The position numbers and the translations under genes are program-made. Of a stretch of 41,722 bases of DNA, positions 2,247-37,017 are shown one piece after another (position 1 is the first letter of the stretch; every line of letters begins with the position of its first letter). Source of the DNA: Macrostomum lignano (Eukaryota); the NCBI GenBank assembly GCA_002269645.1, contig NIVC01004571.1, forward strand, positions 1 to 41,722. The letters are read 5' to 3'. The notes under the pieces are model-generated. The model saw nothing but the letters and a program-made list of their open reading frames with translations. It was not told the DNA's origin and did no database searches.

Positions 2247-2303
2247 CAAATTTAAAAGCATGCGCATCCCAGCAACCTAGGAGCAAACCAAACAGAAACT
2301 CAC

Positions 2304-3099
2304 CTTAGCCTTGAGCGCATCGTGAGACTCCAGCATGTGCAGCAGCTCGGCATTGTCAATCTCGAGCAACATTCCAGTAATCTTGCCGGCCAACGGGGCG
2401 TTCATCTCGTGAATCAGCGGATAGAGACGCTCGCCAAGCATCTGCTTCTGCTCCTGCGGCGGAGCTGCGGCCAGCATAGCGGTGGTCAGAGCCTCCTGAC
2501 CGCCGATGTTCTGCTGCTGTTGCTGCTGCATCATCTGCTGCTGCTGCTGAACAGACGGCGGCATTCGAGCGCCGACAGGGCCTCCGCCCAGCTGGTAGCC
2601 GCCACCAGTGGCCGCCTGAGGACCGAATGGCTTCCTTGGTGGCTGCTGCTGCTGCTGAGGCCCTCCAACGGTTGATCCGGCAATCGGACGACCACCAGGC
2701 TGTTGCTGCTGCTGCTGCGGCGGCTGCTGCGGCGGCGCGCCCTGCTGATTGGTGATGGCCCGAGAGCCTGGACCGCTGTTTCGAAGGCCGGCAGCAGCGG
2801 CGGCTGCGGCGGCTGCCGAAGGCATGGGTGGCCGGTGCTGAATAGCGGCGGCTCTAGCGGCGGCGGCGGCGGCAGCGGCTGCAGCTGCCTGCGGCGTGCC
2901 AGGCATGGCGGCTCCGTATTGGGCGGCCGGACGGATCGGCTGGCCGCCGCCTGGCTGCTGGTGGCCGTGCATGCCGGCACCTGCGGCGGCCCACCTTGGC
3001 GGCGGCGGCTGCTGCTGCTGCGGGTGGCCGCCGGCGTGATGCGGCCGCTGATGCTGCTGCTGCATGCCCATGCCCATGCCTGCCATGGGGTTGTAGAAC
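2304..3099 (-). CDS. PABPC1: PABP coding exon 5 (Q/A/G/P-rich linker and most of the MLLE/PABC domain)
   Basis: ccgcag|G TTC TAC restores R-FYNPM. Contains [15 protein letters not shown]...[22 protein letters not shown]; ends GCT AAG|GTGAGT; 796 nt. Confidence 0.95.
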
Positions 3100-3139
3100 C
3101 TGCGGTTGGGTTTTAGTGTGACATCTGTTATCGCGTAAA

Positions 3140-3990
3140 GCATGAGACTGAAAGTGGCGACTCACAGGGCAGAGACATGAGACTGAAAGTGGCGACTCAC
3201 AGGGCAGAGACATGAGACTGAAAGTGGCGACTCTCAGGACAGAGACATGTGACTGAAAGTGGCGACTCTCAGGGCAGAGACATGAGATTGAAGATGGCGA
3301 CTCTCAGGGCAGAGACATGAGACTGAAAGTGGCGACTCTCAGGGCAGAGACATGAGACTGAAAGTGGCGACTCTCAGGGCAGAGACATGAGACTGAAAGT
3401 GGCGACTTTCAGGGTAGAGACATGAGATTGAAGATGGCGACTCTCAGGGCAGAGACATGAGATTGAGATTAAATTTGGCGGCTCTCAAGGCAGAGACATG
3501 AGATTAAATTTGGTGGCTCTCAAGGCAGAGACATGAGATTAAATTTGGCGGCTCTCAAGGCAGAGACATGAGATTGAAGATGGCGACTCTCAGGGCAGAG
3601 ACATGAGATTCAATTTGGCGGCTCTCAGGGCAGAGACATGAGACTGAGATGGCGATTCTCAGGGTAGAGACATGAGATTGAAGATGGCGATTCTCAGGGT
3701 AGAGACATGAGATTGAAGATGGCGACTCTCAGGGCAGAGACATGAGACTCAATTTGGTAAGTCTCAGGGTAGAGACATGAGATTCAATTTGGCGACTCTC
3801 AGGGCAGAGACATGAGATTGAAGATGGCGACTCTCACGGTAGAGACATGAGATTCAATTTGGTGAGTCTCAGGGTAGAGACATGAGATTGAAAGTGGCGA
3901 CTCTCAGGGTAGAGACATGAAATTCAATTTGGTGACTCTCAGGGCAGAGACACGAGACCCAATTTGGCGATTGTCAGGGTAAGAGACATA
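3140..3990. repeat. 35-bp minisatellite filling PABP intron 4
   Basis: CATGA recurs at 3141, 3176, 3211; unit about CATGAGACTGAAAGTGGCGACTCTCAGGGCAGAGA with variants; about 24 copies. Confidence 0.95.
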
Positions 3991-4012
3991 AACAGGCTAA
4001 TCCATGACTCAC

Positions 4013-4608
4013 CTGCCAGCGGGCTGCTGCATAGTGGGCACAAAATAGCCAGGCGCCTGAGTCTGCGGCATGAACTGGCTGGGCAACTGACCCTGCATTC
4101 GGTAGCTGGCCAACCGCTGCATGTACTGCGAAGCCAAATGAGCCTTACGATCCTCCTTGCGCTGGGCCAGAGCCACGTACAGCGGCTTGCTAACCACAAT
4201 TTTGCCATTCATCTCAGTGACAGCTTTAGTAGCCTCTTCGGGCTGGGCAAAGCAGACGAAGCCGAAGCCTTTGCTGCGGCCAGTTGAGTCAATCATCACC
4301 TTAGCCGAAGTGATGCTGCCAAATTGCACAAATTCGGCTCGCAATTTCTCGTCGTCAATTCCATCGTCAAGGTTCTTAACGTAGAGATTAACGCCAGTCT
4401 GATAGCGATTCATTCGCTCCTGACGTTGGCGTTCGAACTTTTCGCGCAATTCAGCCAAACGTTCGCCTTTCTTCTGCGCCCGGCCAACATAGAGAGTCTT
4501 GCCGCCGTCCAGCTCTTTGCCGTGCAGAGCGTTCACGGCCGCCTCGGCGGACTCGGGCTCCTTGAAACAGACGAAACCAAAGCCTTTGGACTTGCCGTTC
4601 TCATCCAC
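4013..4608 (-). CDS. PABPC1: PABP coding exon 4 (RRM3, RRM4, start of linker)
   Basis: tctcag|GTG gives [15 protein letters not shown]...[19 protein letters not shown]...[18 protein letters not shown]...QQPAG AG|GTGAGT; 596 nt, ends phase 2. Confidence 0.96.
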
Positions 4609-4869
4609 CTGAGATGATTAATCAAAGGAAAGAATATTATTAGAGATGGATCGAGTAATCGGTATTGGTGAAATTGGTCAGTTTTCGGGGATATTCGTTT
4701 TGGTTCGTGGAATTTTGTCTTTGTTAAAAAATACAACACTGTTTGTCACACTTGTGACAGACAAATAAATGGCGGTGAAATAAATGAGGCACGTGACTGT
4801 CAGTGTGACCTTCAAGTGTGACACTTATGGAACGATCACCCATTTATTTGACATGGTCCCATTGGAGTT

Positions 4870-5225
4870 CAGAGGGCACCTGATGGACGTTCGTTTACTT
4901 GATGGTCACATTGGAGGTCATGTGATTGACCGTTTATTTGATGGTCACATTGGAGGTCATGTGATTGACTGTTTACTTGATGGTCACATTGAAGGTCACG
5001 TGATTGACTGTTTATTTGATGGTCACATTGGAGGTCACGTGATTGACTGTTTATTTGATGGTCACATTGGAGGTCACGTGATTGACCGTTTATTTGATGG
5101 TCACATTGGAGGTCACATAATTGCCCGTTTATTCAAGGTATCATTGGAGGTGACATGATTGCCCGTTTATTCAAGGTATCATTGGAGGTCACGTGATTGA
5201 CCGTTTATTTGATGGTCACATTGGA
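4870..5225. repeat. 39-bp minisatellite in PABP intron 3
   Basis: Unit about GTGATTGACTGTTTATTTGATGGTCACATTGGAGGTCAC (13-aa periodicity in ORF 4784..5158); degenerate edges. Confidence 0.92.
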
Positions 5226-5322
5226 GGGTTAGAATGGAGGATCACATAGGACACCGATTTTGAAGGGCCACAGGACAGTCATATAGTTAATATTAATCGA
5301 AATTTCAAATTAGAGTAATTAC

Positions 5323-5601
5323 CATCACTCTGGAGGAGGTGATCTCGCCAAACTCTGAGAATGCCTGGTGAAACGATTCTTCGTCATAATAGTCGCCAAA
5401 GTTTTTCACAAACACGTTCGTGTATTTGCGATCGCCCGCCTCCTGACGCCGATCTTTGCGCGGCATGAAAGGGCCGACAAACACTTTTTTGCCGGCTAGC
5501 AGCATGCCGTTGACCTTCTCGACGGCCTGGTCGGCTGCCTCCTGAGTCTCAAAGTGGACGAAGCCGTAGCCGCGGGAGTTGCCCGTCTCGTCTGTGGCGA
5601 T
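5323..5601 (-). CDS. PABPC1: PABP coding exon 3 (RRM2 to RRM3)
   Basis: ccgccag|ATC gives IATDETGNSRGYGFVHFETQEAA...YTNVFVKNFG...SSRVM|GTAATT; 279 nt, phase 0/0. Confidence 0.95.
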
Positions 5602-5732
5602 CTGGCGGTTGGAAGGCGCGAATGACAAATTTGAGTTTAAGAGCTTTGAGCAGGGAATGTTAATTAAGCATGATGCATAGACAGGCTGACAAAGGGTGGC
5701 AATGCAGCAGTTCACTGAATCTGAATGACGGG

Positions 5733-6395
5733 AGAGGTGTCAGTGATAGGGGAGGGGTGTCAGTGATAGGGGAGGGGTGTCAGTGATAGGGGAGGGGTGT
5801 CAGTGAAAGGGGAGGGGTGTCAGTGATAGGGGAGGGGTGTCAGTGATAGGGGAGGCGTGTCAGTGATAGGGGAGGCGTGTCAGTGATAGGGGAGGCGTGA
5901 CAGTGATAGGGGAGGCGTGTCAGTGATAGGGGAGGGGTGTCAGTGATAGGGGAGGGTGTCAGTGATAGGGGAGGGGTGTCAGTGATAGACTGATAGAGGA
6001 GGGGTGTCAGTGATAGAGGAGGGGTGTCAGTGATAGGGGAGGGTGTCAGTGATAGGGGAGGGGTATCAGTGATAGGGGAGGGGTGTCAGTGATTGTGGAG
6101 GGGTGTCAGTGATAGGGGAGGGGTGTCAGTGATAGGGGAGGCGTGTCAGTGATAGGGGAGGGGTGTCATTCATAGGGGAGGGGTGTAAGTGATAGGGGAG
6201 GGGTGTCAGTGATAGAGGAGGGGTGTCAGTGATAGGGGAGGCGTGTCAGTGATAGGGGAGGGGTGTCAGTTATAGGGGAGGGTGTCAGTGATAGGGGAGG
6301 GGTGTCAGTGATAGGGGAGGCGTGTCAGTGATAGGGGAGGCGTGTCAGTGATAGGGGAGGCGTGTCAGTGATAGGGGAGGGGTGTAAGTGATACT
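5733..6395. repeat. 20-bp G-rich minisatellite in PABP intron 2
   Basis: Unit GTGTCAGTGATAGGGGAGGG (variant ...GAGGC), about 33 copies. Confidence 0.95.
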
Positions 6396-7708: not shown

Positions 7709-8005
7709 CATACATGCGCAACAGTCGGCCGAGTCGGCCGATCCGGCCGACCGATTTGGCGGCCAACCAAGGAAGTCGCAAAAATGCCTACCCGAAAAAA
7801 TAACAAAGTAGTAGTACTAAGTAGCTGACGAGGCATTTTGGCGTTATAAGACAGTCATAGTTACTCCTGCCGTTTACCTAAAGTTGCGTTAATTTTGTTT
7901 TAGGTTTTTTTGCATGTAAATCGCATTTTTGGCCAAAAACTATGTCGCATTTTTGTTAAAACTAAGTCGCATGGCCGACCGAATTTCGGAGGTTGCGCAT
8001 GTATG
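7709..8005. mobile_element. hAT-family MITE, 297 bp
   Basis: Perfect 14-bp TIR CATACATGCGCAAC / GTTGCGCATGTATG; 8-bp TSD GCTGTCAA at 7701-7708 and 8006-8013; same termini as the element at 12436-18330. Confidence 0.93.
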
Positions 8006-8636: not shown

Positions 8637-10041
8637 TGTTGTTGTTGTTGGCGTTGCCGTACCATAGCCCTACTCTCTCTTCAGCCTAACCCGTTCTCGG
8701 AACTCGTTCCAAAGGGCCCGGCATTCTTCGGGCATGGCGCATAAGTCGCCCATATCCGTGATGCCGGTCTTCCTCCTGATGTTGTCCATCACTGGGCACT
8801 TCAACAGCACGTGCTCCGTGCCTTCCTCCTTGAGACTGCACAGCCAGCACGTTCCACTCTCCCTGGTTCCAATCCGAGCACCATACTCCGCCAGCTCCGC
8901 GTGTTGTCCAGTCCTGAACCTGGCAAAATCGCACCTGGCCACTCTGCACCACTTTCCTTCCTTCCGCCAGTCCGGCTGCTTCTTCGCGTAGATTTCCTTT
9001 GCCCTCTCGTGCTTCCACTCCATCCTGCCTTCCAGGGCTCTACGAATGTGGTTAGTGGCCGCTTTCCTTGTCCAGAAGACACCTTCTTCGCCTCGTCCCT
9101 CTGCCGCCAGCCTGTCAGCCAGCTCATTTCCTTCCACTCCGACATGTCCTGCCACCCACTTCATCGTCAGGGTTCTTTCAGGCCACTTCGCGATCTTTAG
9201 CCAGCAATGCCTCACGTCCTGCCATTCACCCTTCCATCTGTCCTGGAAAGCCCGGAGCGCTGCTTGACTGTCACTCACAATGGTGGCCGTTTTCCAATCT
9301 GCCGCGTCCAACCAATCGATTGCCATACGGAGTGCCCTGATCTCGGCTTGCGTGGACAAGCATCCCTGTCCCGCTGATCCTCGAGCTTTGCCCTGCTTCG
9401 TGCTGCCCCGGTAAATGATGAGACCAGCTCCACCTTTACCGTCCTTGCCTACCGACCCATCTGTGTACAGGATGTAGTCGGTGTCTCTGTTCGCAATCCA
9501 GCTCTCTGCGGTTTCCTTGTTCTCTTTCTCGGTTGCCTGCCGGTTCGTGAGCTCCTCCAAGGCAACCTTAGTTCTGATTTGAACCCACGGTGGGATTTGC
9601 CTGCTCCGCTCTTCCGGCTCCGGCTCCGGTAACTCCAGTCTGGTCCAGTCCTCGCGACACTTCTGCCTCCAGTTGGGCTTCTTCAGCCTCTTCTTCATGC
9701 GCCTATTGGCCATCTCATTCCTAGGCGATTCCGCTGGTAGCTGTCAGTAGCTATCATAGGTCTTCAGCGTCTGGAACTGCAGCCTGCTTTCCAGCGATGG
9801 TAGCCCGGCTTCTTGCAGCACCGCTTCCACCAGCGTGCTGGCCAGTACTCCGGCAATGGCTCTGGTGGCTGCCCGCTGGCACCTCTCCAGCTTCTCCAGG
9901 TATACCTTGGCCAGCCATGGGTACCATGCCGGGGCCGCGTACTCCAGAATCGGTCTCACTAGCGCCAGGTAGGCCATCCTCACAATCTCCAAGTTTAGAC
10001 CTCCCTCCAAGCAACACAGCTTCTTCAGCAGGTTCAGCAGG
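8637..10041 (-). mobile_element. 5'-truncated non-LTR retrotransposon of an RNase H-bearing (I-group-like) clade
   Basis: 12-bp TSD TGCCATTAGTGT (8625-8636, 10042-10053) and a (CAA)n 3' tail. Encodes the RT C-terminus (LVRPILEYAAPAW...LERCQRAATRAI), RNase H (YTDGS, AEIRAL, SDSQAAL, WVAGHVGVEGNELADRLA) and a CCHC finger (CWLC...EHVLLKC). One in-frame TGA at 9744-9746. Confidence 0.9.
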
Positions 10042-11644: not shown

Positions 11645-12435
11645 TTTTACGCATGTCTCTGCTTTAAAAAGACACCTCAGACACACACAAAGACGCTTCA
11701 CAAGCTGAGATATTCCCTAGCAACTGTTGTTACGACGTTTCCCAATATACCGAATACTGTATATAGTAGTTTTTTGAGAAGCCACTACATCGTCCCACTT
11801 TGGTCTTTCTGCATGAAATTTGCACAGCTGTTTTACGCATGTCTCTGCTTTAAAAAGACACCTCAGACACACACAAAGACGCTTCACAAGCTGAGATATT
11901 CCCTAGCAACTGTTGTTACGACGTTTCCCAATATACCGAATACTGTATATAGTAGTTTTTTGAGAAGCCACTACATCGTCCCACTTTGGTCTTTCTGCAT
12001 GAAATTTGCACAGCTGTTTTACGCATGTCTCTGCTTTAAAAAGACACCTCAGACACACACAAAGACGCTTCACAAGCTGAGATAATCCCTAGCAACTGTT
12101 GTTACGACGTTTCCCAATATACCGAATACTGTATATAGTAGTTTTTTGAGAAGCCGCTACATCGTCCCACTTTGGTCTTTCTGCATGAAATTTGCACAGC
12201 TGTTTTACGCATGTCTCTGCTTTAAAAAGACACCTCAGACACACACAAAGACGCTTCACAAGCTGAGATATTCCCTAGCAACTGTTGTTACGACGTTTCC
12301 CAATATACCGAATACTGTATATAGTAGTTTTTTGAGAAGCCGCTACATCGTCCCACTTTGGTCTTTCTGCATGAAATTTGCACAGCTGTTTTACGCATGT
12401 CTCTGCTTTAAAAAGACACCTCAGACACACACAAA
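11645..12435 (+). repeat. 186-bp tandem array, left arm of the Foldback element (continues 18339-18389 after the hAT insertion)
   Basis: Unit starts TTTTACGCATGTCTCTG at 11645, 11831, 12017, 12203, 12389; about 4.5 units in total. Confidence 0.95.
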
Positions 12436-12653
12436 CATACATGCGCAACAGTCGGCCGAGTCGGCCGATCCGGCCGACCGATTTGGCGGCCAACCAAGTA
12501 AGTCGCAAAATTGATTAACCGCCAAAAAAAACGAAAAAACAAAAGACGAAAAAGGGGAAAGGAAAAGGAAAAAACGAGAAAAAGGGAGCAAAGAGAAAGA
12601 GAAAAACACAAAAAGAGTTGTAAGTGCTGTAAGTTGCAGCACTGAAGACAAGG

Positions 12654-13143
12654 TAAGTCGCACCGAGGGCGAGCTAAGTCGCACCGAGGGCAAGCTAAGT
12701 CGCAGCAGGACCGAGCTAAGTCGCATCGAGGGCGAACTAAGTCGCACCGAGCGAGAGCTAAGTCGCACTAAGGGCGAGCTAAGTCGCACCGAGGGCAAAA
12801 TAAGTCGCACCGAGCGAGAGCTAAGTCGCACTAAGTCGCAGCAGGACCGAGCTAAGTCGCACCGAGGGCGAGCTAAGTCGCAGCAGGACCGAGCTAAGTC
12901 GCACCGAGGGCGAGCTAAGTCGCAGCAGGACCGAGCTAAGTCGCACCGAGGGCGAACTAAGTCGCACCGAGCGAGAGCTAAGTCGCACTAAGTCGCAGCA
13001 GGACCAAGCTAAGTCGCACCGAGGGCGAGCTAAGTCGCACCGAGCGAGAGCTAAGTCGCACCGAGGGCGAGCTAAGTCGCAGCAGGACCGAGTAAGTCGC
13101 AGCAGGGCCGAGGTAAGTCGCAGCAGGACTGAGTTAAGTCGCA
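12654..13143. repeat. hAT subterminal array (about 21-bp units with core TAAGTCGCA), probable transposase-binding sites
   Basis: More than 20 copies of CTAAGTCGCA(CCGAGGGCGAG/GCAGGACCGAG). The core AAGTCGCA/AAGTTGCA also recurs in the other end and in the MITE. The binding-site role is inferred from general hAT architecture. Confidence 0.8.
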
Positions 13144-13493
13144 GAGCATCTTTAGGATTATTAGGTTAGGATTAGTTTAGGATGAATTTAATGTATCACT
13201 TACTAGGGTGTAGGCTACGTGTGCATTAACGCATCAATTTGAAAAATTAAGAATTACGAAGCCAGAAATGGCTAAGGAATAGAAATAGGGATAGAATAAC
13301 TTATAAGCAGTAATTTTTCAGCCCTATTACAATTGCAAATCATACTTTTAATAATATTTAATTAGCAAATTAAAACTGCAAGATTCTAACGGTCTTATAT
13401 ATGAACTTAGAAGAACTGTAGTCTTAATGATTATGCATGTACCATTGTAATAATTGATTAAAATTGTAGCAGATTAAAACTGATAAAAAACTT

Positions 13494-16113
13494 TTAAAAT
13501 AGTCCACTTAGCAAATCAGAATCAGAATCTTTATTTTCCTCGTCTACGTTGGATTCTTTTTGCCGTTGACCTCCAGGAGCATCAGAACGCCAGTGTTTTT
13601 TCAGCCAATCATTGACATAAATATCCGGCTTAAATTTCATCAGCGGAGGCCCATTTATTCGAATCCGTAGTAGATGCTCCAATGTTTTTGGTGCCAAGCG
13701 TGTTCTCCTGTCATAGGCAATGTGCTTATAGATAGAAAACCCTCTTTTAGCCTCAGCTGATGATATTGGCAAAGTTAACACAACCATAATTAGATTCTTT
13801 ATTCTGGGCAGCCATTCAACAGTTCTTGTCTCTAGAAAGTGACTCCAAAATTTCACCGGACCTTTGCCTTTGTAGGCACAGAAGTCAACACTATGCGAAG
13901 TGATCAAACTTTTTAGGAGTAGACCGAACTGACCAGAGATTGTCCTTTCTGTAGCGCGTTCTGAAGCATCTGCATCTCTAGAGTCTGAATCAGAAAGATG
14001 GTCCTCTGTTTCAGATTCAGAGCTGTCATCTTCCATTCCAAACCGTCTAGCAAGAGGTATGATTCTCGAACTGTATGTAAAGACAGTATGTAATGTTTCA
14101 GCATTAGGCAATAACACTGGGTTGAGCACATTAAATATTGAGTAGTCATCCTCAGGAAAATAATTACGCAGCTGATCAATTATGCTATCAATGATTCGAC
14201 TGCGAATCTCATCCAGTGCTGGATAAGCTCCCATGTCAACAACACTGCCACGTCCACTAGCATCAAATAATCTATTTCTTAGAGATCTGTCTGCAGCAGA
14301 ACCTGGTTGCTTCAACTCAAACCTCTCTGTTGGATCGCTGCTTCCAGGGCCGGAAGGACAAGCAAAGTTAGAATAAGATAGGTCTCTTGTGTGACATCCT
14401 GAATGGTATTCCAGCTGCGGATATCCATCTGCAGTTCCCAAAACTCGACGACACTTGCAGGAAGCCAAAAAGTCCACAATGCGAGGACCATTGTTCGTTT
14501 TTAAGGTTTCTAGTGAATGGATAAGGTTAGTTTGGCGTTCTTGCAAGCCAATAAATGTACCCTTGGCTCTTTGAAACTGCAAGGACTCAAATTCCAGTAA
14601 TTTTAGAATGTCCATGAGAAATAGATATAATGAATAATACCGGACATTTTGCAATGTTTTCAATAATCCAGAGGCAGTTGCTTTACTTTTGTCATCAAAG
14701 CCTGAGGAAGGTGATTTGATATTTTCTAAATTTGTCAGAAGCAAGTAGTATGACTTTCGAATCACATCAAGAGCAGACACTTCCGATGCAACCCACCTGA
14801 TACGATATATTCTTTTTAATTCATAGAAAACCAAGTTGAGTGCTTCCGAAGTTTGTGCCAAAGATGCCTTACGTTTAACAGCGTGGCTCATATAAAATTT
14901 GTGTAGAGAATTTATATTCTTATCGAGATGTTGCATAAATGGGAAGATTTCAAAGGCATGATAGATTGAAAGTTCTAACTTATGCGCTGCACAATGGTGC
15001 TGAAAAAATTGTTTGCTAGCCCAAGGCCTCAGTTGACTTATTAATCCCACTCGACTTCCTGTCATTACGGATGCACCATCAGTTGTCACCCCCCATAGCC
15101 TTCGTTTGATTTCATCTTCTAGCTTGTCATCCGAAAATAAACGGATGAGAAGTTCATAAATGCTTCGTCCAGTCTCTACTTCAGTCAGACGTTTAAACCG
15201 ATAAAAAAACATCAAAGGTTGGCTGTTTTCAAGAACTCTGAAGTATATCATGACGTAGCTGTTTGAATGAATATCAGACGTTGTATCTAGTACAATAGAA
15301 ATCGGAAGGTTGTCAGCACTTTTAATGTAATTCACAAATGTCCGATGCATTGTATTACTGATTGATTCCACCATTGCTGCGGCACTTTTGCGATGCTTAT
15401 GATGGCTCCCCATATCCAACCCATTTTTTACTTGTAAATCAATCATATTTGGATGAGCACTGAATGGAATATTAGATTTGACTTCGGCGAAAAAACTGTT
15501 GTCAAAACTCGGGCTGTTATTTCATCTCGTTTAGTTTTAGCTAGTCTAGCGGCCTCATTCATCTGTTTGAGTTGCTTTGCAAGAACTGAAGTATGTTTTT
15601 CCTTCATCCACTTTATGGCGTCACTGTGAAGTGTATTTGATGAATGTTCCTGTAGTTTTCTTTGTACGCTATCTTTTGCATGACCTTTGGGAATGTAGCC
15701 TTGTTCTGTTGCAAAAGTTAACTTACGTTGGCTCTCTAGATTTGTCTCCTTTTTCTTATGTGCATTCAAAAATTTTCTGCAGATCCGACATTGTATTCCA
15801 GATCTTGATAGATCTTCGGTGTTTTGAACATATTGAAACCATGTCTTCATTTCTTGTGACACAAATTTTCTTGAAAATGATCTGCAATGGTCAAATTAGA
15901 GAATATTTTGGGATTTGGACTATTTGTGAGTATCTAAAAGCAATATGCTAATAAGTGCAATACACAATACACTATACATTAATTTACAGTTCGTCAGTTT
16001 CCATTTACTTACTGTGACTGGTGCATCTCCAAAGAATGTAACCACTCCTCTCGAAAACCAGATGTATCCTCCCAGTCCTTTTTAGGGAAAACTTCAATAT
16101 TTTCGCCCATCAT
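13494..16113 (-). pseudogene. hAT transposase (TTF-type Zn finger + DDE/RNase H fold + C-terminal dimerisation region), disabled
   Basis: Motifs W..C..C...H..H (TTF-like), IVLDTTSD, TTDGASVMTG, HCAAHKL, RWVAS, PISSAEAKRGFS (catalytic E replaced by K, codon 13746-13748). Frameshift in the A6 run at 15490-15495. In-frame intron 15882-16012 (CA|GTAAGT...TTGCAG|A). Possible start ATGATG at 16113. Confidence 0.9.
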
Positions 16114-16311
16114 AGAGGAAGACGAGGGCTTTGATGCTGAAGTGGCTAGACATGCGTCTGCAGATGTGCTTATGCATGGTATTTTTCTTTGCGATGGCCC
16201 TGCTTCTGCAGTATTTACTTGTACTATTTCAACATCACCTGAACCCCTTGAGTCGCTCGAATCTTAATCAACAATAGGACTTTGGCAAAGTGATCGTTTC
16301 GTTGATTGTCT

Positions 16312-17600
16312 TTAAACATTTACTTGCCTAATAATTTCCACTTGTAGTTTGCTTGTTTGCTGGTCATTCTCCAACAACTCTCTTCTTTCCTGTACATTTG
16401 CAGCAGAGCAAAAATTAGAAGTTTCTGCAGCAGCAGTTTGAACAGCATGATCTCGATTAGCTGCTATTTGCTCTGAAAATTCATAGGACCTGGCCAATTC
16501 ACTACGGTGTGAGCTTTCAGAACATGGAGCTGGAGCAGGAGCTAGTCGCATTTTGATTCTTTCTGTTGCTGATGAAGCAGATGCTAATGCTGAGTCTGCC
16601 AATGTACATGCTTCTCTTGAAGGTGTATTTATGATGGCTTCAATATTGTCCTCTAAAATCCAATGAGCACCTGAGCAGTCATTTTATCTACCTGGAGTCA
16701 ACTGTCCAAGTTTCCACCTTGTAAAAAGCAAAGGCTTTCGTAACTCACTGCTGGATTCAGGGCACCGGTTTATTGAATAGTCCTCATGACCAAGTTCATC
16801 CCATTCTCTTGCTGGCTTTAAGATGTAGTTGGGCTTGTCTCTTAGCCTACGATAAATGGACTCAAAAATGTGCACCTGTTATTGTTCCTAATAATTTCAG
16901 CTAATGAGTTATCAATGATAATTTTATCTTCATAAACAGGTCTTCTTTGTGTTGCATGCATTTTAGCTAGTCGCAGTTTTCCAATGCTACTGGCAGTTGT
17001 GGAACTTGAACTGTCCGATTCTGATCTAGAAAAGTCTCGTTGATACAAGAGAATAATGGCCATAGCACTTTTACCATTCCCATTCTTTAATGCATTTGGT
17101 TCTGTTGGAATTGTCTTACTAGCAGACTTGAAAAAATCAATGATGGATGACTGCGATGATCTACTAGGAGCGGAACTTGGCAGCCCATGTCTAGTTTTTC
17201 CCTGATACCCAATAGATGTATCGGTAAAAAACATATCTGCTGCTTCCTGCTTCCCTTTTGATGCAATAACAAAGAAACTGCTGTCCGTTTTGAAGCCCGA
17301 GGACCGATAGAAGTCAGCAGAAAATGAAACCACAGGTCGTCTAAAATCGCCGCTATATTCTTGAACTCCAATCAGAAGAAAATCATGGAGTCTCACTGGC
17401 ACTGATCCTAATAGCATTGCAGTTGTAGAACAAACTTTCTTTAGCTCAATGAACTCTGAAAATTCTTGAGATCCAATATTAGGCTCATCAGTATTTAACT
17501 CATTTATAACAATTGAGCACTCACTCTCAGCTAGAATACCATTGATAGCTAGGATGCCACTTAGAATCAGTAGGCAAAGACAACTAAGGCTGTACATCAT
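16312..17600 (-). pseudogene. Signal peptide + LTD (lamin-tail)-like module carried by the hAT element, in frame with the transposase; disabled
   Basis: ATG 17600: MMYSLSCLCLLILSGILAINGILA-ESECSIVINELNTDEPNIGSQEFSEFIELK... Restoring one base in the A5 run at 16864-16868 continues the frame to EDYSINRCP...WKLGQLTPGR*NDCSGAHWILE (TAA 16684-16686). The domain call is from motif recall and needs an HMM check. Confidence 0.65.
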
Positions 17601-18907
17601 TCTGTGAAAGATTAAGTCGAGTATATGATTTTGGTGATAAAATAAAATTGATTTATGAGTATTACTATATAAATAAAACATTTAAAAGCCCTTACCTTTA
17701 CCAATTCATGTACAGAAAGTAAGTGTAAATACAACCAATTGCCTTGGTAGTTTAGTTATATGCTCGTATCAGATGCAGGCAGACAGCATAGGCTGCCAAG
17801 GTGCTATAAGTTAAGGTTAACTTTCACTATTTGGCTTTACAGACTGCTTTTATCGCTGCATGCATTGACTTAGCCTTAGCTTGTGCCATCATACTCATAC
17901 AGCTATATATACATATGTATCTCTGCCACTCCCCACTTTTGCAACCTTACACTGTACAATCATGCCTAAAACACTCCGTGTCAAGTGTACTGTTCTAGTG
18001 CCACATGGGGTACAAATACGATAAGGAATGACAAGAGTCAAAACCATACATGCACAATAGTTGGCCAATATGGACGACTGATTTGGCGGCCAACCAAGGT
18101 AAGTTGCAAAAATGCCCACCCAAATAAATACCAAAGTAGTATTAAGTAGCTGACGAAGCATTTTGCCTTAATAAAGACAGTCATAGTTACTCCTGCCGTT
18201 TACCCAAAGTTGCGTTAATTTTGCTTTCAGGTTTTTTCATGTAAGTTGCATTTTTGGCCGAAAACTACGTTGCATTTTTGTTAAAACTAAGTCGCACGGC
18301 CGACCAAATTTTGGAGGTTGCGCATGTATGCACACAAAGACGCTTCACAAGCTGAGATATTCCCTAGCAAATGTTTTTACGACATTTTGATAAGGACGCA
18401 CTTTTTCCCAAATCCCGCGCTAGCACATGGGCTCTAAACTTACTAGCCTACTGACAGCCTAGGCTAAGGGCATTTTTATACTCTTTTATCTTTTATCGAG
18501 ATAGCAAATTTGTCGAACGACTACCAGAATAAAGTAAGACCTGACTCTCAAAATGGCAAAGAAAGTTTGCGACTAAATTATGACTGGAGAGTATCAGGTA
18601 TCACTTTAAGAAATTGATCTGCCTACCGCAGAAGCAAATGAGTCCCAAACCGATTCGCAATTGACAACTCCGACAAGGGTAAGCGAAATCGCCCACCGAA
18701 CAACTGCAGAACGTGCAAACACCAAAGACAGGCGCCAAACGTCGGAAAAGTGATCACTTTGCTAAACAGTGCACATTAGTAAAATCGAACAGAATTAATG
18801 TTATCGACTCAGACGATGGGGTAATCCCGTCAGCAACTGAGAATCAAACTACAGAAAATAAGCATCAAAACATTTCGTGCAACGAAACATAAAACACCCC
18901 ATAAATA

Positions 18908-20112
18908 TCACGTCAGACTTGATCCGACTGCTATTGAGACAGATTTCACGCGGTTGGTAGCTGTTGTTACAATAGAGTACAGGAATACGCATCCGATATA
19001 ATCCGCTTTTTTAATTATCGATCCGGTGGCGTTAATATGAAGAACATTAAGCTCATTTTCCTGTATTAGGTCGATTAAATATTGCAGTTGGTAACCAGAG
19101 TACAAAACGACACGCAGGGGATCAGCGCAGCGCTCTCTAACTATTCCCGGCAAGTACTTGTGTGGGTATTCTTCTTGTAGAGCAGTCTGCATAATGAGTA
19201 ATTCCATATTAACGTCCTTATGTAGTAATTTCGCCTCATTTACCTTTTTGGCTATTTTTTACATTACAAATTTCGATTTGCATGAGTCAAAGTTTTTGCT
19301 CAAGACGTGACGCATGTGCTGATCTTCATTGGACAGCTTTCGATGCGCTCCAGACGCCCCATGCTCTGCGACAAGTTTTGTGAAATTTTCTTCCTCATCC
19401 TCTGTTATTCTTCTAAAAGTTGATGATTCGGCTTTCGAGTGGTCAAAGAGACCTCGTCCAATGACGTGCCACTCCCAGCGTTCTTGCGATTGGGGTTCTT
19501 CCTTCATTACAAAAGTAAGTTCTCTCTTGCACCCCTGCATCTTGCACGCAGCCCTTACTGTCCAGAAATTCGTAGATTTTTTTCTAGATTCAACCGCACT
19601 AATATGACAGTAACCCCTCATGCGCAGGCAACAAGACGATACAGATCTCAATGATTTGCAGAGAGCTTCATTTAGTGCTGGCTTCGAAAAAACATACTTG
19701 GAATTATTGATTCGTAAATTAATCTTCCTTATAGCGTTAATCGATATTGTCACTGTCGCTGTCACTTCATTCCTTGAGGAGCAGTCCATAACAAGTTGCC
19801 CTTCAGGAGTCCCTTCAAGAGTCCCTTCAGGAGTCCTTCAGGAGTCCCTTCAGGAGTCCCTTCAGGAGTCCCTTCAGGACTTCCGGCTCTCTCATTGTTG
19901 GTCGCCTGGCCAGCTGCTGGCTGGGCTTCAGCATGGCCACTGGTTGGCTGATATTCAGTGGAGCTATGAGGTCTAAAAGAATTGCTGTTCTGTTGGAAAC
20001 AAGACTCATCTTCATGAGGAGGTTGTCCGGGCAAACATCGGGTACTACATGTAGATGTGGCTTTCCGAAGCCAATTCCACATAGTCATACGATTTCTTAA
20101 GTTATTTCTCAT
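18908..20112 (-). pseudogene. MULE (NOF-like) transposase remnant of the Foldback element
   Basis: Zn-finger-like FWTVRAACKMQGC...WHVIGRGLFDH. After an in-frame TAA (19259-19261) it reads KIAKKVNE...PGIVRERCADPLRVVLYSGYQL...VLHINATGSIIKK...FLYSIV, where the MULE first-Asp motif D-A-T-G is N-A-T-G (codon 19031-19033). Frameshift in a 12-bp PEGT repeat (about 19835); C-terminus missing. Confidence 0.75.
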
Positions 20113-20683: not shown

Positions 20684-21186
20684 CCTATATAGCCATTCGT
20701 AGACGTCAGTCTCTCACAAAGCCAAAAAAAATGCTTACTTCTTCCTTGGTAGGGAAACTCATTGAGATGGTGACCAGGAACAAAGCCAAAATGCATATTG
20801 ACAACCTCATGCCGAAAAAAAGCTGTCAGATGAATTAAGTACCAAAATATGCTAGTGCTTATTGTACTCTTGCCAATATAAGATAGAGATATTGTAGTCA
20901 GCAGAGACAATTCATCCATATTGTCAAAATGAGCTTGTTAGTGAGAAAGATTATATACCAAAACAGGGTGCAAGCATATTCTGTGTTAGGCCTCTTGCGT
21001 AATGTACATGGCAAAATGACAACGAATGTACATAAAGAAAAAATGCCTCCTGTACAGTGTTAATATTGCTGATAGATCTGCCTAAAGTAAAGTGCTTCAG
21101 ATCGGTAGAAGGCAAATACAAGTATAACGTACATTCCATGCCGGTGTCCAAATGCAAGTTAGATATGAGCATGCCTTCAGGCAACC

Positions 21187-22195
21187 GTTGCTAGGGAATA
21201 TCTCAGCTTGTGAAGTGTCTTTGTGTGTGTCTGAGGTGTCTTTTTAAAGCAGAGACATGCGTAAAACAGCTGTGCAAATTTCATGCAGAAAGACCAAAGT
21301 GGGACGATGTAGCGGCTTCTCAAAAAACTACTATATACAGTATTCGGTATATTGGGAAACGTCGTAACAACAGTTGCTAGGGAATATCTCAGCTTGTGAA
21401 GCGTCTTTGTGTGTGTCTGAGGTGTCTTTTTAAAGCAGAGACATGCGTAAAACAGCTGTGCAAATTTCATGCAGAAAGACCAAAGTGGGACGATGTAGCG
21501 GCTTCTCAAAAACTACTATATACAGTATTCGGTATATTAGGAAACGTCGTAACAACAGTTGCTAGGGAATATCTCAGCTTGTGAAGCGTCTTTGTGTGTG
21601 TCTGAGGTGTCTTTTTAAAGCAGAGACATGCGTAAAACAGCTGTGCAAATTTCATGCAGAAAGACCAAAGTGGGACGATGTAGCGGCTTCTCAAAAAACT
21701 ACTATATACAGTATTCGGTATATTGGGAAACGTCGTAACAACAGTTGCTAGGGAATATCTCAGCTTGTGAAGCGTCTTTGTGTGTGTCTGAGGTGTCTTT
21801 TTAAAGCAGAGACATGCGTAAAACAGCTGTGCAAATTTCATGCAGAAAGACCAAAGTGGGACAATGTAGCGGCTTCTCAAAAAACTACTATATACAGTAT
21901 TCGGTATATTGGGAAACGTCGTAACAACAGTTGCTAGGGAATATCTCAGCTTGTGAAGCGTCTTTGTGTGTGTCTGAGGTGTCTTTTTAAAGCAGAGACA
22001 TGCGTAAAACAGCTGTGCAAATTTCATGCAGAAAGACCAAAGTGGGACGATGTAGCGGCTTCTCAAAAAACTACTATATACAGTATTCGGTATATTGGGA
22101 AACGTCGTAACAACAGTTGCTAGGGAATATCTCAGCTTGTGAAGCGTCTTTGTGTGTGTCTGAGGTGTCTTTTTAAAGCAGAGACATGCGTAAAA
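21187..22195 (-). repeat. 186-bp tandem array, right (inverted) arm of the Foldback element
   Basis: Reverse-complement unit starts at 22195, 22009, 21823, 21637, 21452 (185-bp unit), 21266; about 5.4 units. Confidence 0.95.
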
Positions 22196-23242: not shown

Positions 23243-24346
23243 TCAGATACAAAAACAATCCGACAATTTTTTTATCCCAAGCAACGTCCTTATCGATCGA
23301 CGACAAAGTGGTCGAGAGGTAAAAACGTTCCGGTAAGTATTAGGTAAGGAAGAAGCAAAATTTTGTAGAGAGTGAAGTGAAAAATAGGAGCGGGCTCCGT
23401 TTGAATTGTATTAGACAGTTTACAACGTAAATGTAAAACAAAGTTTTATTGCACCACAACAGTTTATATAATAATACTCTTGATAAGTATATTTATCGAA
23501 AAATTCAAAACAGAATATTTAGCTAGTCTTGTTTAAAGTTTATAAAATTTGAGAATACTTTTTTTAAAAACCTTTTCAAACTGCCGTGATGAGGAGGCAC
23601 ATCCGCCCGGCCTGTCCACCAGCAGAGCCCATGATGTGCGCGAAAAGGTATGTTAATGCGAAAGTGATTTATCAATGCATTTCACGATTCGTGGAGTATG
23701 AGACTGCATGAATACATGCCAAAGGTCGCGACTTTTTATATACTATGATGGGTAAAAACAGAAAGTTCTCGCTTTTTTATATAAAACCTTGAAATGAAGT
23801 ACAGCTTATTTGAAGATATATTTGGTACCGTGGCGTAGAATTCGGGTTGCTCTACATCAGTCAATGGCCTTTTTATAACTGCACACGAGGCTTTCAGAAA
23901 TTCGTAGTCTTTTATCCTCATAAACGTTAAACTGCGAGAACTTTTTGTTTTACCCAACTACATGTACGTACTTTTTAGTACATGTATGCAACTATGTAGC
24001 TGTAGTTGCAAGTAGCGCTAGCTAGATAAATGTACATAGACATAGACATTTATATATTTATATATGTATACATATGCATGTCTATACTCGTACATGGTAT
24101 ATAGACCACAAGTAGAGGACCAGCTTTATACATGTACATGTAATTCGTCCATGCATGATTTGGTACGTGTACTTGTATTAATTTACTATTCACAGTCAAT
24201 GCTACAGTACAGTTACATGTTGATGTGTAATGCATCATATGTTTGGATCCGGGTACCAATATCACTCAAGGACAACTCAGGACGGTTACACTCGCGAGTG
24301 GTAGAAATTCTAGAAAAGGCCGCTTGCTTTAGCTGTGTCTATATGT

Positions 24347-25930
24347 GACCGGCCTAGCGGGAGCAGCATCAGGTATGGCAAGACGACCCCGCGATTCGGC
24401 AAGCGAGGGAAGAGCTGGAGAGACGTCTGTTTGAGCAGGCGACCAACCCGCGAGGCAGAGGAGGCCTTGGCGGCTGTCTATCTGTCGCGCAAACAGGCTG
24501 TTGATGATGCCATTCTGGCCGCCGCTGGGCCTGATGCCCCCAGAGGCCGTGTGGCCTGCAGATCGGCTATCAAATCTCTGACGGGGCGAAAGCGGCGCAT
24601 TCTACTCAACCTGACAGGCGACTCTGCGGACGAGCGCAGGAACGAGCTGCATGAGTTCTTCGCCGCCATTTGTCAACGCGCCGCCACTCCGCTGCCAGAC
24701 AGTCTGACACGTCGGAGATGCCGTTGCCGGCAGAGGAGAGCTTCAGCCCAGCACCAGTCAGCACAGCCGACGTTGTGAGGCTCGCCCAACAGTCAACGGG
24801 CGGGAAAGCGCTGGGTCCGGACGAGGTGCCCATCGAGGCGCTGCGCATCCACTGTGTGGCCAGTGAGGTCGCCAGAGTGATGAATCGCGTGCTCTTCGGT
24901 GAGGAGGCACCCAACGAGTGGACCACGGCGCACATCGTCGCAGTTCCTAAGAAGCCGGGCACCACGAGGCTTGAGGATCGCATCGAGGTATCTGCCTGCA
25001 GTCCTGCGCCGTGAATTTGTTCAACCGGATGCTGTTATCGCGGTTGCAGATCGTGCTGGATCCGTACCTGCGTCCTGAGCAGAACGACTTCCGGTCCCAT
25101 CGCGGCACAGTGATGCAGTTCCTGGCTCTTCGCCGAGTCATGCATCGAGGAAGCACGGATACGCCAGTCGATCCTGATTGTTATCTTCATAGATTTCAAG
25201 AAGGCACTCGTCTCGGTGGTCTGTGCTCCCATAGTTGCTTCTCGTGCGTAAAATGTGCCAGAGCAGCTGATTTCCGCCATCATGGCGATGTGCCGTGATA
25301 CGAAAGCTGCTGTTTCAACACCGGACGGCCTATCGGACTTCTTTCTTTGTGCTTCAGGGAGATACAGTACACTTGCACCGTTCCTGTTCGTTCTAGTGCT
25401 TGACTGGGTGCTCTTCCTACCAACGACGACGGCTTTCTGTTGCGGCGACTCGTGGGTCGACGTCAACTGGAGAGGCGGCTCAGCGTGCTTGGCTACGCCG
25501 ACGATCTCGCCCTGCTGTCCTCAACTGGACAAGCTAGTTGCTGTCGGCCTGGTGGTCAACACGCAGAAGACCGTCGTGCTCTGCGTGCCGGACGACATCG
25601 AGGCTGCGATTTTGTGCCGAGGTACTGATGGACAGGCGACAGAGCTTCCGCGTTGTCAGCAGTTCGTCTACCTCGGCGGTCTGGTTCCCGGCGTCTGCGG
25701 GCTCGCCTGTGCTGCCTTTCGTTCTGTGAGGGCAGGGACTACTCAAGCATGTTTGAGTAGTCCCTGTGTGAGGGCTGTCCTGCAGTCCGAGGCCTTCCTG
25801 ACGGCGTTGTTCCAGGAGTTGATCGAGACCGTCCTGCTGTACAACGCCGAGACCTGGACGCTAACGGAGTCGCTCGAGGAGGTGCTGTTGCTAACGCTGC
25901 AGGCACCCTACCGGCGGGGGCAGGCGATAT
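24347..25930 (+). mobile_element. Decayed RTE-like non-LTR retrotransposon fragment
   Basis: Frameshifted pieces: AIKSLTGRK, KALGPDEVPIEAL, EWTTAHIVAVPKK, LRPEQN.FR, IDFKKA, LAPFLFVLVLDWV, LGYADDLALL, LLYNAETWTL. Ends approximate. Confidence 0.85.
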
Positions 25931-26417
25931 AAAATATATGTACATATATAAGTGTCCAATCCTCACAAGATCCAATTTCCACCCGCCTAAAACTCCGCGA
26001 AATTTTTATTCAAAATCACTGTACGTAGTAACGCACTTTCATTTAATGCATCGAAATGATCCGCGCCAATTTTTATATCCCACCGATCGAGGTTTTGTCC
26101 ACAAAGTACATGTATGAGCGTACAGCATACAAATTTATTTTACAAAGACGTGGAAATTTGTCATGACGTACTCATTTTAAATGCATTTGTACTTCTGTAA
26201 TCACAGACATATATATGGAGCATGTTGATCATTATTATAGAGAACCTTTTTCTGATAGATTGTAGATACATACTCGCAGTAGTGTACGGCACTGAGATGT
26301 ACATGAACACTGATTATTAATTCTATTTTCTTCGATAAATTATAAAGTGCTTTAAACAATACTTAAATATTTTGGTACAAATTTTGACCCGACATTTATT
26401 AATATCAAATAGCGCAG

Positions 26418-31794: not shown

Positions 31795-32499
31795 TTATCT
31801 AAATTATAAAGTTGTCAGTGATTACCTCTCTGGCATTGTCACACAGTCATCGAGAAATCTCTTCACTCTCTCCGCTTCCTCAGTATCCTTGAGTCTGCCT
31901 CTCCGCTCCCTCAGTATCCTTGAATCTGCCTCTCCGCTCCCTCAGTATCCTTGAGTCTGCCTCTACGCTTCCTCAGTATCCTTGAATCTGCCTCTCCGCT
32001 CCCTCAGTATCCTTGAATCTGCCTCTCCGCTCCCTCAGTATCCTTGAATCTGCCTCTCCGCTTCCTCAGTATCCTTGAGTCTGCCTCTCCGCTCCCTCAG
32101 TATCCTTGAGTCTGCCTCTCCGCTTCCTCAGTATCCTTGAGTCTGCCTCTCCGCTCCCTCAGTATCCTTGAATCTGCCTCTCCGCTCCCTCAGTATCCTT
32201 GAATCTGCCTCTCCGCTCCCTCAGTATCCTTGAGTCTGCCTCTTCGCTTCCTCAGTGTCCTTGAGTCTGCTTCTATGTGTTGGCTTTTCAAACGCAGTAG
32301 TGTAGCTGATCGAGTATATTTCTTAGTCAACGATCAAAAGGGGAAAGTTAAGAGAGGATGAAGCCAGAGGCTGATTTAATAGCTTTAGTTTTAGGCATAG
32401 ACAAACTTATACAGTATCGTTCTAGAAAGTTCTAAGACTTGGGGAATCTAACGAGTTACTATAATTAGCATAGATACAATTTACATTACTTTTTCAACA

Positions 32500-35500: not shown

Positions 35501-36555
35501 CTTGTCATGTGGCAGGAGCATAATGAGTTTTACCTGACCACTGCCGCAGGCCTCGACTGTTCGACCATCACCTAGGCTGACCCGTTCAGGTCGTCCAAAC
35601 TGCTTATAGTTGACTAGTAGCTCTCTAGAGTATGTCATGTGGCAGGACGCTCCAGAGTCAATTATCCAGGTGGATATGTCAGAGCTGGTCTTCGCGGGCG
35701 ACACAAAGAATGTCTCGTTGCAGCTACTTTTAGGTCCGTAGTCATCAAGCGAGGTTTCAGCGATGTCCCGGGTCGCGGCACCATCGGCTGTTTTGGCGAC
35801 ATACCGTGCAGGTCCTTGGTCCTTGACGAACTTTTTCGCTCCTCCTGAACGACAGTCTCGGGCAAAGTGACCCATCTTTCCGCAATTAAAACATTTGATA
35901 GCACGACGTGGCAGACCTTGGCCTTTTTGGGTCTTCAGTGCAGACTCTCCACCCTGTGTACCACCAGACCCTCGCTCACTTAATTCACTCCGCTTTTGCT
36001 CCTCGTTGATGAGTGCTTGGTGAACCATCTGCAGTGTAAGATCATCACCGCGAGCTTCCAAGGCAGTAACCAAGGTAGAGTAGCTCTCAGGCAGGCTGCT
36101 GAGCAGCATGACCACTTGGTCCTCTTCACTGACGGGTGCGTTGATAGAGGCTAGTTTGTCGGTCAGCTCCTTCATATGGCGTATATGATCCTGTACGCGG
36201 GTCCCTTCACTCATCTGCAGCCGGAAAAGCTGTTTCTTCAAATAGATCTTATTCGCAGTTGATTCTCGTTCGAAGTGCTGTTGGAGAGCTTGCCACATAC
36301 GATGTGGATCTTCGCCACACGAAGTTATTAGATAGATTAACTCTTTCTTGATTGAAAGAACGATCACTGCAGCAGCTCTCTGTTGCTGCTCTCAAAATCG
36401 TTTTCTTGCTCCTGAGTGGCATCCTCTGCGAGAATTACAGAACCGTCGACGACTCCCCAGAGCTTCCTCGCTATAAGACAGAACTTGATCTGGATCTTCC
36501 AGGTAGTCCAGTTTCCGCTTCCCAGCTTGTCGACTTGAAACTTATCATCCGCCAT
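32597..36555 (-). CDS. Copia gag-pol polyprotein with one frameshift near 36390
   Basis: ATG 36555 MADDKFQVDKLGSGNWTTWK..., shifts at about 36389-36394 into the 1256-codon ORF. Zn knuckle CFNCGKMGHFARDC, protease WIIDSGASCHM, LWHQRLGH, integrase LIHSDICGP, RT YVDDL, RNase H YSDADWA. Confidence 0.93.
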
Positions 36556-36659: not shown

Positions 36660-37017
36660 TGTTGGCTTTTCAAACGCAGTAGTGTAGCTGATCGAGTATA
36701 TTTCTTAGTCAACGAGCAAAAGGGGAAAGTTAAGAGAGGATGAAGCCAGAGGCTGATTTAATAGCTTTAGTTTTAGGCATAGACAAACTTATACAGTATC
36801 GTTCTAGAAAGTTCTAAGACTTGGGGAATCTAACGAGTTACTATAATTAGCATAGATACAATTTACATTACTTTTTCAACACTATGCTCCCTCAGTATCC
36901 TTGAATCTGCCTCTCCGCTCCCTCAGTATCCTTGAGTCTGCCTCTCCGCTCCATCAGTATCCTTGAGTCTGCCTCTCCGCTCCCTCAGTATCCTTGATTC
37001 TGCCTCTCCGCTCGAGC

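Follow-up and report, generated by a model that had tools for sequence, protein, structure and literature searches.

Why would a DNA transposon begin its transposase with what looks like a secreted module? DNA transposases are expected to be nuclear and to carry DNA-binding accessory domains. The question is raised by a hAT element in Macrostomum lignano. The whole stretch of DNA that we analysed, hereafter the window, is 41,722 nt long (assembly GCA_002269645.1, contig NIVC01004571.1, positions 1-41,722, forward strand). The hAT element spans positions 12436-18330 and its gene is on the minus strand. This gene opens with a signal-peptide-like leader, followed by a divergent lamin-tail domain (LTD), and only then reaches the transposase. 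Our overall interpretation, which we consider likely to be correct, is that the element is a decayed copy of an autonomous hAT transposon. It would belong to a clade in which leader, LTD and transposase form one polypeptide, the LTD having been captured from a host gene. The product would have a dual fate, secretory and nuclear.

The predicted order of parts is leader, LTD module, Ser/Ala-rich linker, GT-AG intron, CxxC...H...H finger (CRIC...H...H) and hAT DDE transposase. The reading starts with an ATG at position 17600 and the hydrophobic leader MMYSLSCLCLLILSGILAINGILA (17529-17600; this and all other parts of the gene are on the minus strand). The module (16675-17522) runs from ECSIVINELN to TPGR*NDC and reads ECSIVINELNTDEP...EFSEFIELKKVC...DYSINRCP...LTPGR*NDCSGAHWILEDN. 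The initial annotation of this DNA, made by inspection of the sequence, had placed the start codon, the leader and the ECSIVINELNTDEP...EFSEFIELKKVC stretch here, and all were found. The linker (16013-16674) has conserved Cys residues, the remnant of a basic cluster (SQRKIPC, 16174-16194; RKRP in the relative P0004) and a WEDTxxF...W motif (16039-16083). The canonical 131 bp intron described previously (15882-16012; GTAAGT...TTGCAG, phase 2) is borne out by relatives. Thus, in L002 and L003, both ~60% identical to the window, an intron of ~183 nt interrupts the same codon position in the same phase; module, intron and transposase follow in the same order. L001 and L004 have a GTAAGT donor at the donor point of the window.

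Exon 2 (13494-15881), in which the reading frame is broken, was assigned by its motifs and a match to PF05699. The CxxC...H...H finger lies at 15758-15796 and 15626-15646. It had been called a TTF finger; the motif is present but no Pfam model matches. Downstream are the motifs DTTSD (15273-15299), TDGASVM (15063-15089), HCAAHKLEL (14970-14999) and RW (14781-14801). The D...D, HCxAHKL and RW motifs align with those of relatives; catalytic residues were assigned from what is known of such motifs. The hAT dimerisation domain PF05699 is at ~13662-13811 (Pfam E 4.1e-6; 26.9 bits against a cut-off of 21.4). Among six full-length relatives scanned, four exceeded the cut-off for this domain and two fell below it. 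The products of relatives also have a precomputed match to PF27073 (FAM200-ZBED5_RNase-like). A hidden Markov model (HMM) search of PDB sequences with the full-length relative P0014 returned no match to any solved hAT structure, Hermes included.

The initial annotation left a choice between a single fused protein and a cassette of two genes. Intact relatives support the former. P0004, found in three Logan assemblies and ~89% identical to the window at the nucleotide level, has an uninterrupted exon-1 open reading frame (ORF) of 576 amino acids, from the leader to ...SLEMHQSQ and the same GTAAGT donor. The exon-1 ORF of P0001 (60% identical) is free of stops for 522 amino acids, again from the leader to the same GTAAGT donor. 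We also searched 1.84 billion representative proteins with a profile of the module, using full HMMER, and recovered 152 proteins at E <= 0.001. At least 11 of these are single, intronless ORFs of 1011-1217 amino acids that extend from the leader, through module, linker and CxxC finger, to the hAT dimerisation domain. Open frames of 1087-1176 amino acids are present in the independent metagenome loci L008, L009, L010 and L018; these begin MAILINVLIILLLLNV..., MLVLWILVLSCVSS..., MQLFTVLFLFFVV... and MEVRHTVVWWVVASMLIVPALC..., respectively. The frames show that intact members have one gene with one predicted polypeptide, consisting of leader, LTD, linker, finger and DDE transposase. In some lineages, including that of the window, the gene is split by the phase-2 intron. 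None of 30 fusion-type proteins that we looked up has a name beyond 'hypothetical protein'. The family member P0012 (MCP4485840.1), also a hypothetical protein, is deposited under a gammaproteobacterial (Gammaproteobacteria) metagenome-assembled genome and is probably eukaryotic DNA binned by mistake.

Is the module a regular companion of this transposase? To retrieve loci independently of the module, JGI/ENA metagenome contigs were scanned with an alignment of the transposase part, using the patterns HCxAH[KR]LxL and SxxxERGFS only. Local HMMs for module and transposase were then run against the 80 retrieved loci. Eleven loci of the close clade (L008-L013, L015, L017-L019 and L024) had at least 560 nt of upstream sequence. 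The module was found in 11/11, on the same strand and a few hundred nt before the transposase match. Conversely, ~25 more distant hAT loci, with upstream sequence of 1 kb or more and transposases ~22-30% identical to that of the window, had no module. Hence, the module marks one hAT clade and is no one-off capture. Sister copies, which the initial annotation had proposed to consult, thus carry it. The clade is a distinct metazoan hAT lineage, widespread and apparently undescribed.

The initial annotation had described the module as LTD-like. Its characterisation here draws on hhalign, an HMM of LTD repeats, dN/dS and AlphaFold2. The module profile found P0067 at E 1.8e-10 in the search described above. 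This protein, Branchiostoma floridae XP_035693005 (UniProt C3ZWX4, 'LTD domain-containing protein'), contains eight copies of Pfam PF00932 (E 7.5e-95). Both P0067 and P0106 (Ptychodera flava XP_070578841), read by eye, show 8-12 LTD repeats between a leader and a C-terminal hydrophobic segment. We aligned 37 transposon modules with 18 such repeats using hhalign. The probability was 99.7% (E 1.6e-25) over 189 columns, which is the whole repeat unit, and the motifs INELN, EFIEL, FVIG, NG..A..L, VD.VVY, S.NRC and TPG..NDC were aligned. A control with the reversed template gave 0.4%. The HMM of the LTD repeats matched 53/53 modules at E <= 1e-5. By profile comparison, we show that the module is a divergent LTD of ~250-300 amino acids that matches one complete repeat of the deuterostome multi-LTD surface proteins, from which it differs by two insertions and an additional Cys pair. 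The LTD assignment thus stands as profile homology to genuine PF00932 repeats; a match to the Pfam LTD model itself was not obtained, at E <= 1 for the window module or at E <= 0.1 for eight relatives. When the protein of the window was run against Pfam, the hAT dimerisation domain was above its cut-off and nothing was found in the N-terminal part.

The AlphaFold2 model built from an alignment of 37 sequences (pLDDT 83, pTM 0.86) is mainly beta with helical inserts; a 4-sequence alignment gave an unusable model (pLDDT 36). Patterns of substitution indicate constraint. The module has a dN/dS of 0.19 between the window and L004 (dS 0.13) and of 0.15 between L004 and L001, lower than the 0.38 of the linker. 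On this measure the module is functional at the level of the family. The simplest origin for it would be a host multi-LTD gene whose 5' end was captured. Horizontal acquisition, which the initial annotation had considered, is unsupported. Among non-transposon proteins, only the deuterostome multi-LTD surface proteins were recognised, and since no bacterial LTD was recognised among the matches examined there is no sign of a horizontal origin. In P0033, the C-terminal half of a second LTD lies upstream of the usual module.

We examined the leader in 62 family N-termini. A 10-residue Kyte-Doolittle mean of at least 2.0 was reached in 84%, compared with 3.7% of length-matched internal segments. 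The median length is 26.5 amino acids and the n-region has a net charge of at least 0 in 58/62. What is conserved is the hydrophobic character and not the sequence. Thus, by hydropathy and charge heuristics, the signal-peptide character noticed in the window holds across the family. Cleavage would likely follow ILA (ILA|ES, with small residues at -1 and -3), and the flanking charges appear to favour a cleavable signal over a reverse signal-anchor.

A Cys residue lies no more than 4 residues before the first strand in 52/62 family N-termini. The Cys before strand A and a second Cys after the EFIEL strand occur together in 54 sequences and are both missing from 12; only 6 sequences are discordant (Fisher p = 4.8e-9). 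At least 9 joint changes of state were counted on a neighbour-joining tree. In the AlphaFold2 model, strands 3-10 and 24-30 sit just inside Cys 2 and Cys 31, which would be adjacent if these strands pair antiparallel. Gain and loss of the two residues together fits a disulfide, and a disulfide needs the endoplasmic reticulum (ER) or the extracellular space. An even number of conserved cysteines was not used as an argument; the count is odd or ambiguous.

The linker has a further conserved feature. A K-K/R-x-K/R basic cluster is found upstream of WExxxF in 14/16 sequences, 15-30 residues before this motif, with which the transposase part begins. The cluster is, for instance, PKKKRV in P0001, RKRP in P0004 and N.RKRRLS in another subclade; in the window copy it has degraded to RKIP. 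The cluster seems to fit a monopartite nuclear localisation signal (NLS) better than a furin site. Furin-type cleavage is retained at most as a low-probability idea, Arg being missing at P1/P4 in many members. Between the LTD and the transposase there is no hydrophobic stop-transfer segment.

The claim that a hAT element bounded by a target site duplication (TSD) occupies 12436-18330 was confirmed. Perfect 14 bp terminal inverted repeats (TIRs) lie at 12436-12449 (CATACATGCGCAAC, plus strand; the 3' end of the element relative to the gene) and 18317-18330 (minus strand; the 5' end). They are flanked by an 8 bp TSD, CACACAAA, at 12428-12435 and 18331-18338. The insertion is in a 186 bp satellite, in the target context ...CAGACACACACAAAGACGCTTCAC..., and nine uninterrupted copies of the target elsewhere in the window, equivalent to empty sites, contain CACACAAA once each. 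A 297 bp non-autonomous relative resembling a miniature inverted-repeat transposable element (MITE) lies at 7709-8005 (plus strand). It has the same perfect 14 bp TIRs, its own 8 bp TSD (GCTGTCAA) and two AAGTCGCA motifs. Its identical TIRs and separate TSD show that mobilisation of the family has taken place in this genome.

By chance, the octamer AAGTCGCA would be expected 1.2 times in the window; we counted 30 occurrences, of which 29 are inside the element or the MITE. It is found near both termini (12500 and 18289) and 24 times in a tandem array of 21 bp units at 12654-13144 (plus strand; Tandem Repeats Finder), subterminal to the 3' end. This array consists of ~23 copies of TAAGTCGCACCGAGGGCGAGC and a variant, all of which hold AAGTCGCA in one orientation. 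Such subterminal repeats are candidate transposase-binding sites. The opposite end has a composite appearance. At 18045, inside the element, CATACATGCACAAT repeats the left TIR in direct orientation and in degenerate form. From there to the terminus, 286 bp (18045-18330) resemble a complete MITE unit, 87.7% identical to that at 7709-8005 but with no TSD of their own, and the homology of L004 (1-146) to the window breaks off precisely at 18044. Perhaps a MITE served to rebuild the right end; alternatively, the 18045-18330 unit may be the source of MITEs.

The window copy is dead and cannot make a functional product. Its lesions are two frameshifts, three stops, the loss of 39 nt from the LTD core and replacement of the predicted catalytic Glu by Lys. 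The first frameshift is a 1 nt deletion in a T-run at 16864-16868, and the single-base repair proposed for it holds: the window has T5 and the near-identical L004 has T6. TAA stops at 16684-16686, in the module, and at 16312-16314 and 16264-16266, in the linker, are present as described. The initial annotation did not mention the 39 nt deletion beside the T-run (~16880/16881), which removes NVHDMIIYGRSTQ, including an Asp invariant across the family. Nor did it mention the second frameshift, two extra nt beside a T6 run (15489-15490), which splits the finger frame from the DDE frame; relatives read through this site as ...RTVYxEVKxNIP... Finally, AAA (13746-13748) encodes Lys instead of the Glu of ...ERxFS, which is Glu in 11/11 relatives. 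At the place of the 16864-16868 frameshift, L002 and L003 have an in-frame stop (CTFF*MY; L002 1106-1108). Because P0001 and P0004 read through, the shared site is probably a coincidence at a mutable T-run. Programmed frameshifting at this 'CTFF' site was rejected on the same grounds, and L004 has T6 where the window has T5, while L002 has an in-frame stop and no shift.

Where would the intact protein act? hAT transposases act in the nucleus. The charges around the leader, together with the missing stop-transfer segment, predict that a protein with a nuclear-acting enzyme part enters the ER. Our best guess, by analogy, is a dual fate, in which signal peptide and NLS share one polypeptide and a nuclear fraction would transpose. 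An ancestral hAT would have captured the 5' part of a host multi-LTD gene (leader and first repeat) once and kept it as an accessory domain. The leader would direct at least part of the product to the ER, where the LTD would form disulfides. A fraction escaping ER targeting, or a leaderless isoform, would be imported via the basic cluster and perform transposition. There, the DDE enzyme would bind the 14 bp TIRs, and probably the AAGTCGCA repeats too. It would excise the element and reinsert it with an 8 bp duplication, as other hATs do, and could mobilise MITEs such as that at 7709-8005.

The main rival to a dual fate is a protein that is wholly nuclear. The leader would not be a working secretion signal; leader and cysteines would be relics of the captured gene or folding aids. 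The LTD would serve as an ordinary accessory domain for binding to DNA, chromatin or the lamina, in the manner of BED, THAP and other N-terminal additions to transposases. The nuclear site of hAT transposition fits this explanation, as does the lamin tail, itself a nuclear Ig-fold domain. So do the NLS-like cluster in the same polypeptide, the linker devoid of a stop-transfer segment and the relatives that lack a leader. However, hydrophobicity of the leader has been kept over deep divergence without conservation of sequence, which is how signal peptides evolve and not how relics do, and its flanking charges fit a cleavable signal. Furthermore, the closest homologues of the module are extracellular repeats and not lamins, and the Cys pair, gained or lost jointly at least 9 times, behaves like a disulfide in need of an oxidising compartment. 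We therefore regard an entirely nuclear protein as possible but rather unlikely.

A bolder proposal can be made only tentatively, and we doubt it: that the whole clade is routed into the secretory pathway, with the leader cleaved and the LTD disulfides formed in the ER lumen. Either a secreted or luminal LTD-transposase would then have a role outside the nucleus of the cell that makes it, such as cell-to-cell or soma-to-germline transfer, or competition between signal peptide and NLS would control the nuclear dose of transposase. If true, this would be a mode without described precedent among DNA transposons.

Several points weigh against our overall interpretation, of a decayed hAT copy with a captured LTD and a dual-fate product. 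First, a cleavable signal would bring the whole transposase into the ER lumen, because the linker has no stop-transfer segment, and this conflicts with nuclear action. The leader is called by heuristics (hydropathy, charge and the -3/-1 rule), and P0018, P0087, P0110 and P0151 are full-length proteins without an obvious leader. The splice junction and the start codon are predictions from sequence alone, and the Cys covariation test was corrected for phylogeny only roughly. With respect to the LTD, Pfam's own model, PF00932, misses the module. Foldseek searches of PDB and BFVD with the confident model gave nothing significant, the best match being weakly Ig-like (E ~0.04), and HMM searches of PDB sequences (profiles A3 and A6; P0014) found no lamin tail. 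Lastly, TIRs and TSDs are not demonstrable for distant relatives. Searches around L007 and ten metagenome loci gave nothing convincing, only low-complexity or AT-rich chance pairs, so mobility is shown in the window only.

The alternatives to the architecture itself fare worse. In a two-gene cassette, a secreted LTD protein would end near 16312 and a separate transposase would start from ATGATG at 16113. The stops at 16684, 16312 and 16264 do divide module from transposase in the window, and L017 has one stop between the two. However, the three window stops are missing from the near-identical P0004 and from P0001; they are private and not ancestral, a point that the initial annotation had left to be checked. 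The Met at 16113 is not conserved, being absent in P0001. Together, the private stops and the non-conserved Met rule out two genes for the family. The intact relatives already contradict such a cassette, single uninterrupted ORFs occur in many distant relatives, and the linker is itself under purifying selection (dN/dS as given above). We consider this arrangement very improbable.

Domestication, in which the gene would be a host gene derived from a hAT transposase and not part of a mobile element, is extremely unlikely. Domestication of hATs is common, and long intact ORFs are under purifying selection in many genomes. However, the window gene lies between perfect TIRs and a TSD, in a satellite with empty-site units, and the window also contains a MITE that has the identical TIRs and a TSD of its own. 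Moreover, the window copy decays as transposon insertions do, and the close copy in L004 sits in different upstream DNA. Some members of the clade could nonetheless be domesticated. A one-off chimera, made by transduplication of a host LTD fragment into a single hAT copy or by an assembly artefact, has negligible probability: DNA transposons do capture host fragments and the window copy is degenerate, but the architecture recurs in independent assemblies at 89%, ~60% and 25-35% identity and in all 11 close-clade metagenome loci, the module is under purifying selection, and we count this explanation as already refuted by the profile search and the linkage test.

In most respects the element resembles other members of the hAT superfamily (Ac, hobo, Hermes; the Buster/ZBED5/FAM200 group). 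Shared features are the 8 bp TSD, short 14 bp TIRs, a single transposase gene, an N-terminal zinc-finger-like motif, a DDE core with CxxH and RW, PF05699 and an associated MITE. The difference is ~550 extra N-terminal residues, comprising the signal-peptide-like leader, the LTD and the Cys-containing linker. Our literature search, for the lamin tail, LTD or PF00932 with hAT, transposase or transposons, and for hAT transposases with a signal peptide, found no relevant paper. What is new thus appears to be the N-terminal module, which is unprecedented; the predicted hAT mechanism is ordinary.

The multi-LTD surface proteins of B. floridae and P. flava share with the element a signal-like N-terminal leader directly before an LTD unit. 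They also share the pattern INELNxDxP...EFIEL...FxIG...NG...LVDxVVY...SxxRC...TPGxxNxC, colinear over the whole ~190 residue repeat. They differ in having 8-12 tandem repeats, a C-terminal hydrophobic segment and no transposase. The transposon module, in contrast, is usually a single unit with two insertions and the extra co-varying Cys pair, and its conserved RCxxFE falls where the deuterostome repeat profile has no conserved Cys. The deuterostome repeats matched by the module share their Pfam family, PF00932, with nuclear lamin tails and bacterial cell-surface LTDs. Solved lamin tails and LTDs have no direct sequence or structure match to the module; the relation is indirect, via the metazoan repeats. 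In bacteria, LTDs are Ig-like domains associated with the cell surface and are often found together with secreted nucleases (PMC5714182).

Two further comparisons concern the proposed fate and origin of the protein. As to fate, a secretion signal at the N-terminus and an internal basic import motif are combined in one polypeptide by proteins of the FGF3 and PTHrP type. FGF3 and PTHrP have a signal peptide and an NLS, and a dual secretory and nuclear fate. These are signalling proteins and not transposases, and such a fate is a hypothesis here. As to origin, a transposase joined to a domain of host origin is also seen in SETMAR and KRAB-transposase fusions. In these, the transposase was captured by a host gene, whose product is immobile. 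The present case appears to run the other way, with a mobile element that took up a host domain and went on transposing, as the TIRs, TSD and MITE suggest.

At the N-terminus of its transposase, a large, old and still recently mobile hAT lineage has thus retained, under purifying selection, a module of extracellular type. If the leader works, the question is how and why a transposase would enter the secretory pathway, in transit or by diversion. If the leader is idle, the LTD would be an accessory domain of a new kind, used in transposase targeting, and the family a clear case of an active transposon that captured and retained an exon of a host surface protein. The family seems invisible to current annotation; its description would improve transposon libraries for marine invertebrate genomes and metagenomes.

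The rest of the window is ordinary, transposon-rich metazoan DNA, with a poly(A)-binding protein gene, a copia element, a Cys-loop channel and non-LTR fragments (LTR, long terminal repeat). Two arrays of the 186 bp satellite, in opposite orientation (11645-12435 and 21182-22195), lie on either side of the hAT insertion and of a further ~2.8 kb (18.4-21.2 kb) that includes a 176 amino acid ORF (19259-19789); a partial satellite unit follows 18331. Exons of the poly(A)-binding protein gene, encoding RRM and MLLE domains, are at 2277-5715 (minus strand). Minisatellites lie in or near this gene, with units of 24 bp (1546-2250), 35 bp (3141-3957), 39 bp (4892-5227) and 20 bp (5730-6393). A copia-type gag-pol ORF of 1256 amino acids (32597-36367, minus strand) is uninterrupted and encodes gag, zinc knuckle, integrase and RVT_2 domains. 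It is flanked by arrays of the same 31 bp repeat (31868-32274 and 36886-37013) and is possibly part of a recently active LTR retrotransposon. Adjoining it is an apparently intronless ORF of 457 amino acids for a Cys-loop ligand-gated ion channel (37018-38391, minus strand; Neur_chan_LBD and Neur_chan_memb). Remnants of non-LTR retrotransposons (an RNase H/zf-RVT ORF and an RVT_1 fragment) occur at 8670-9713, 24335-25932 and 40061-41701, and a (TCAG)n microsatellite of ~194 copies occupies 39259-40035.

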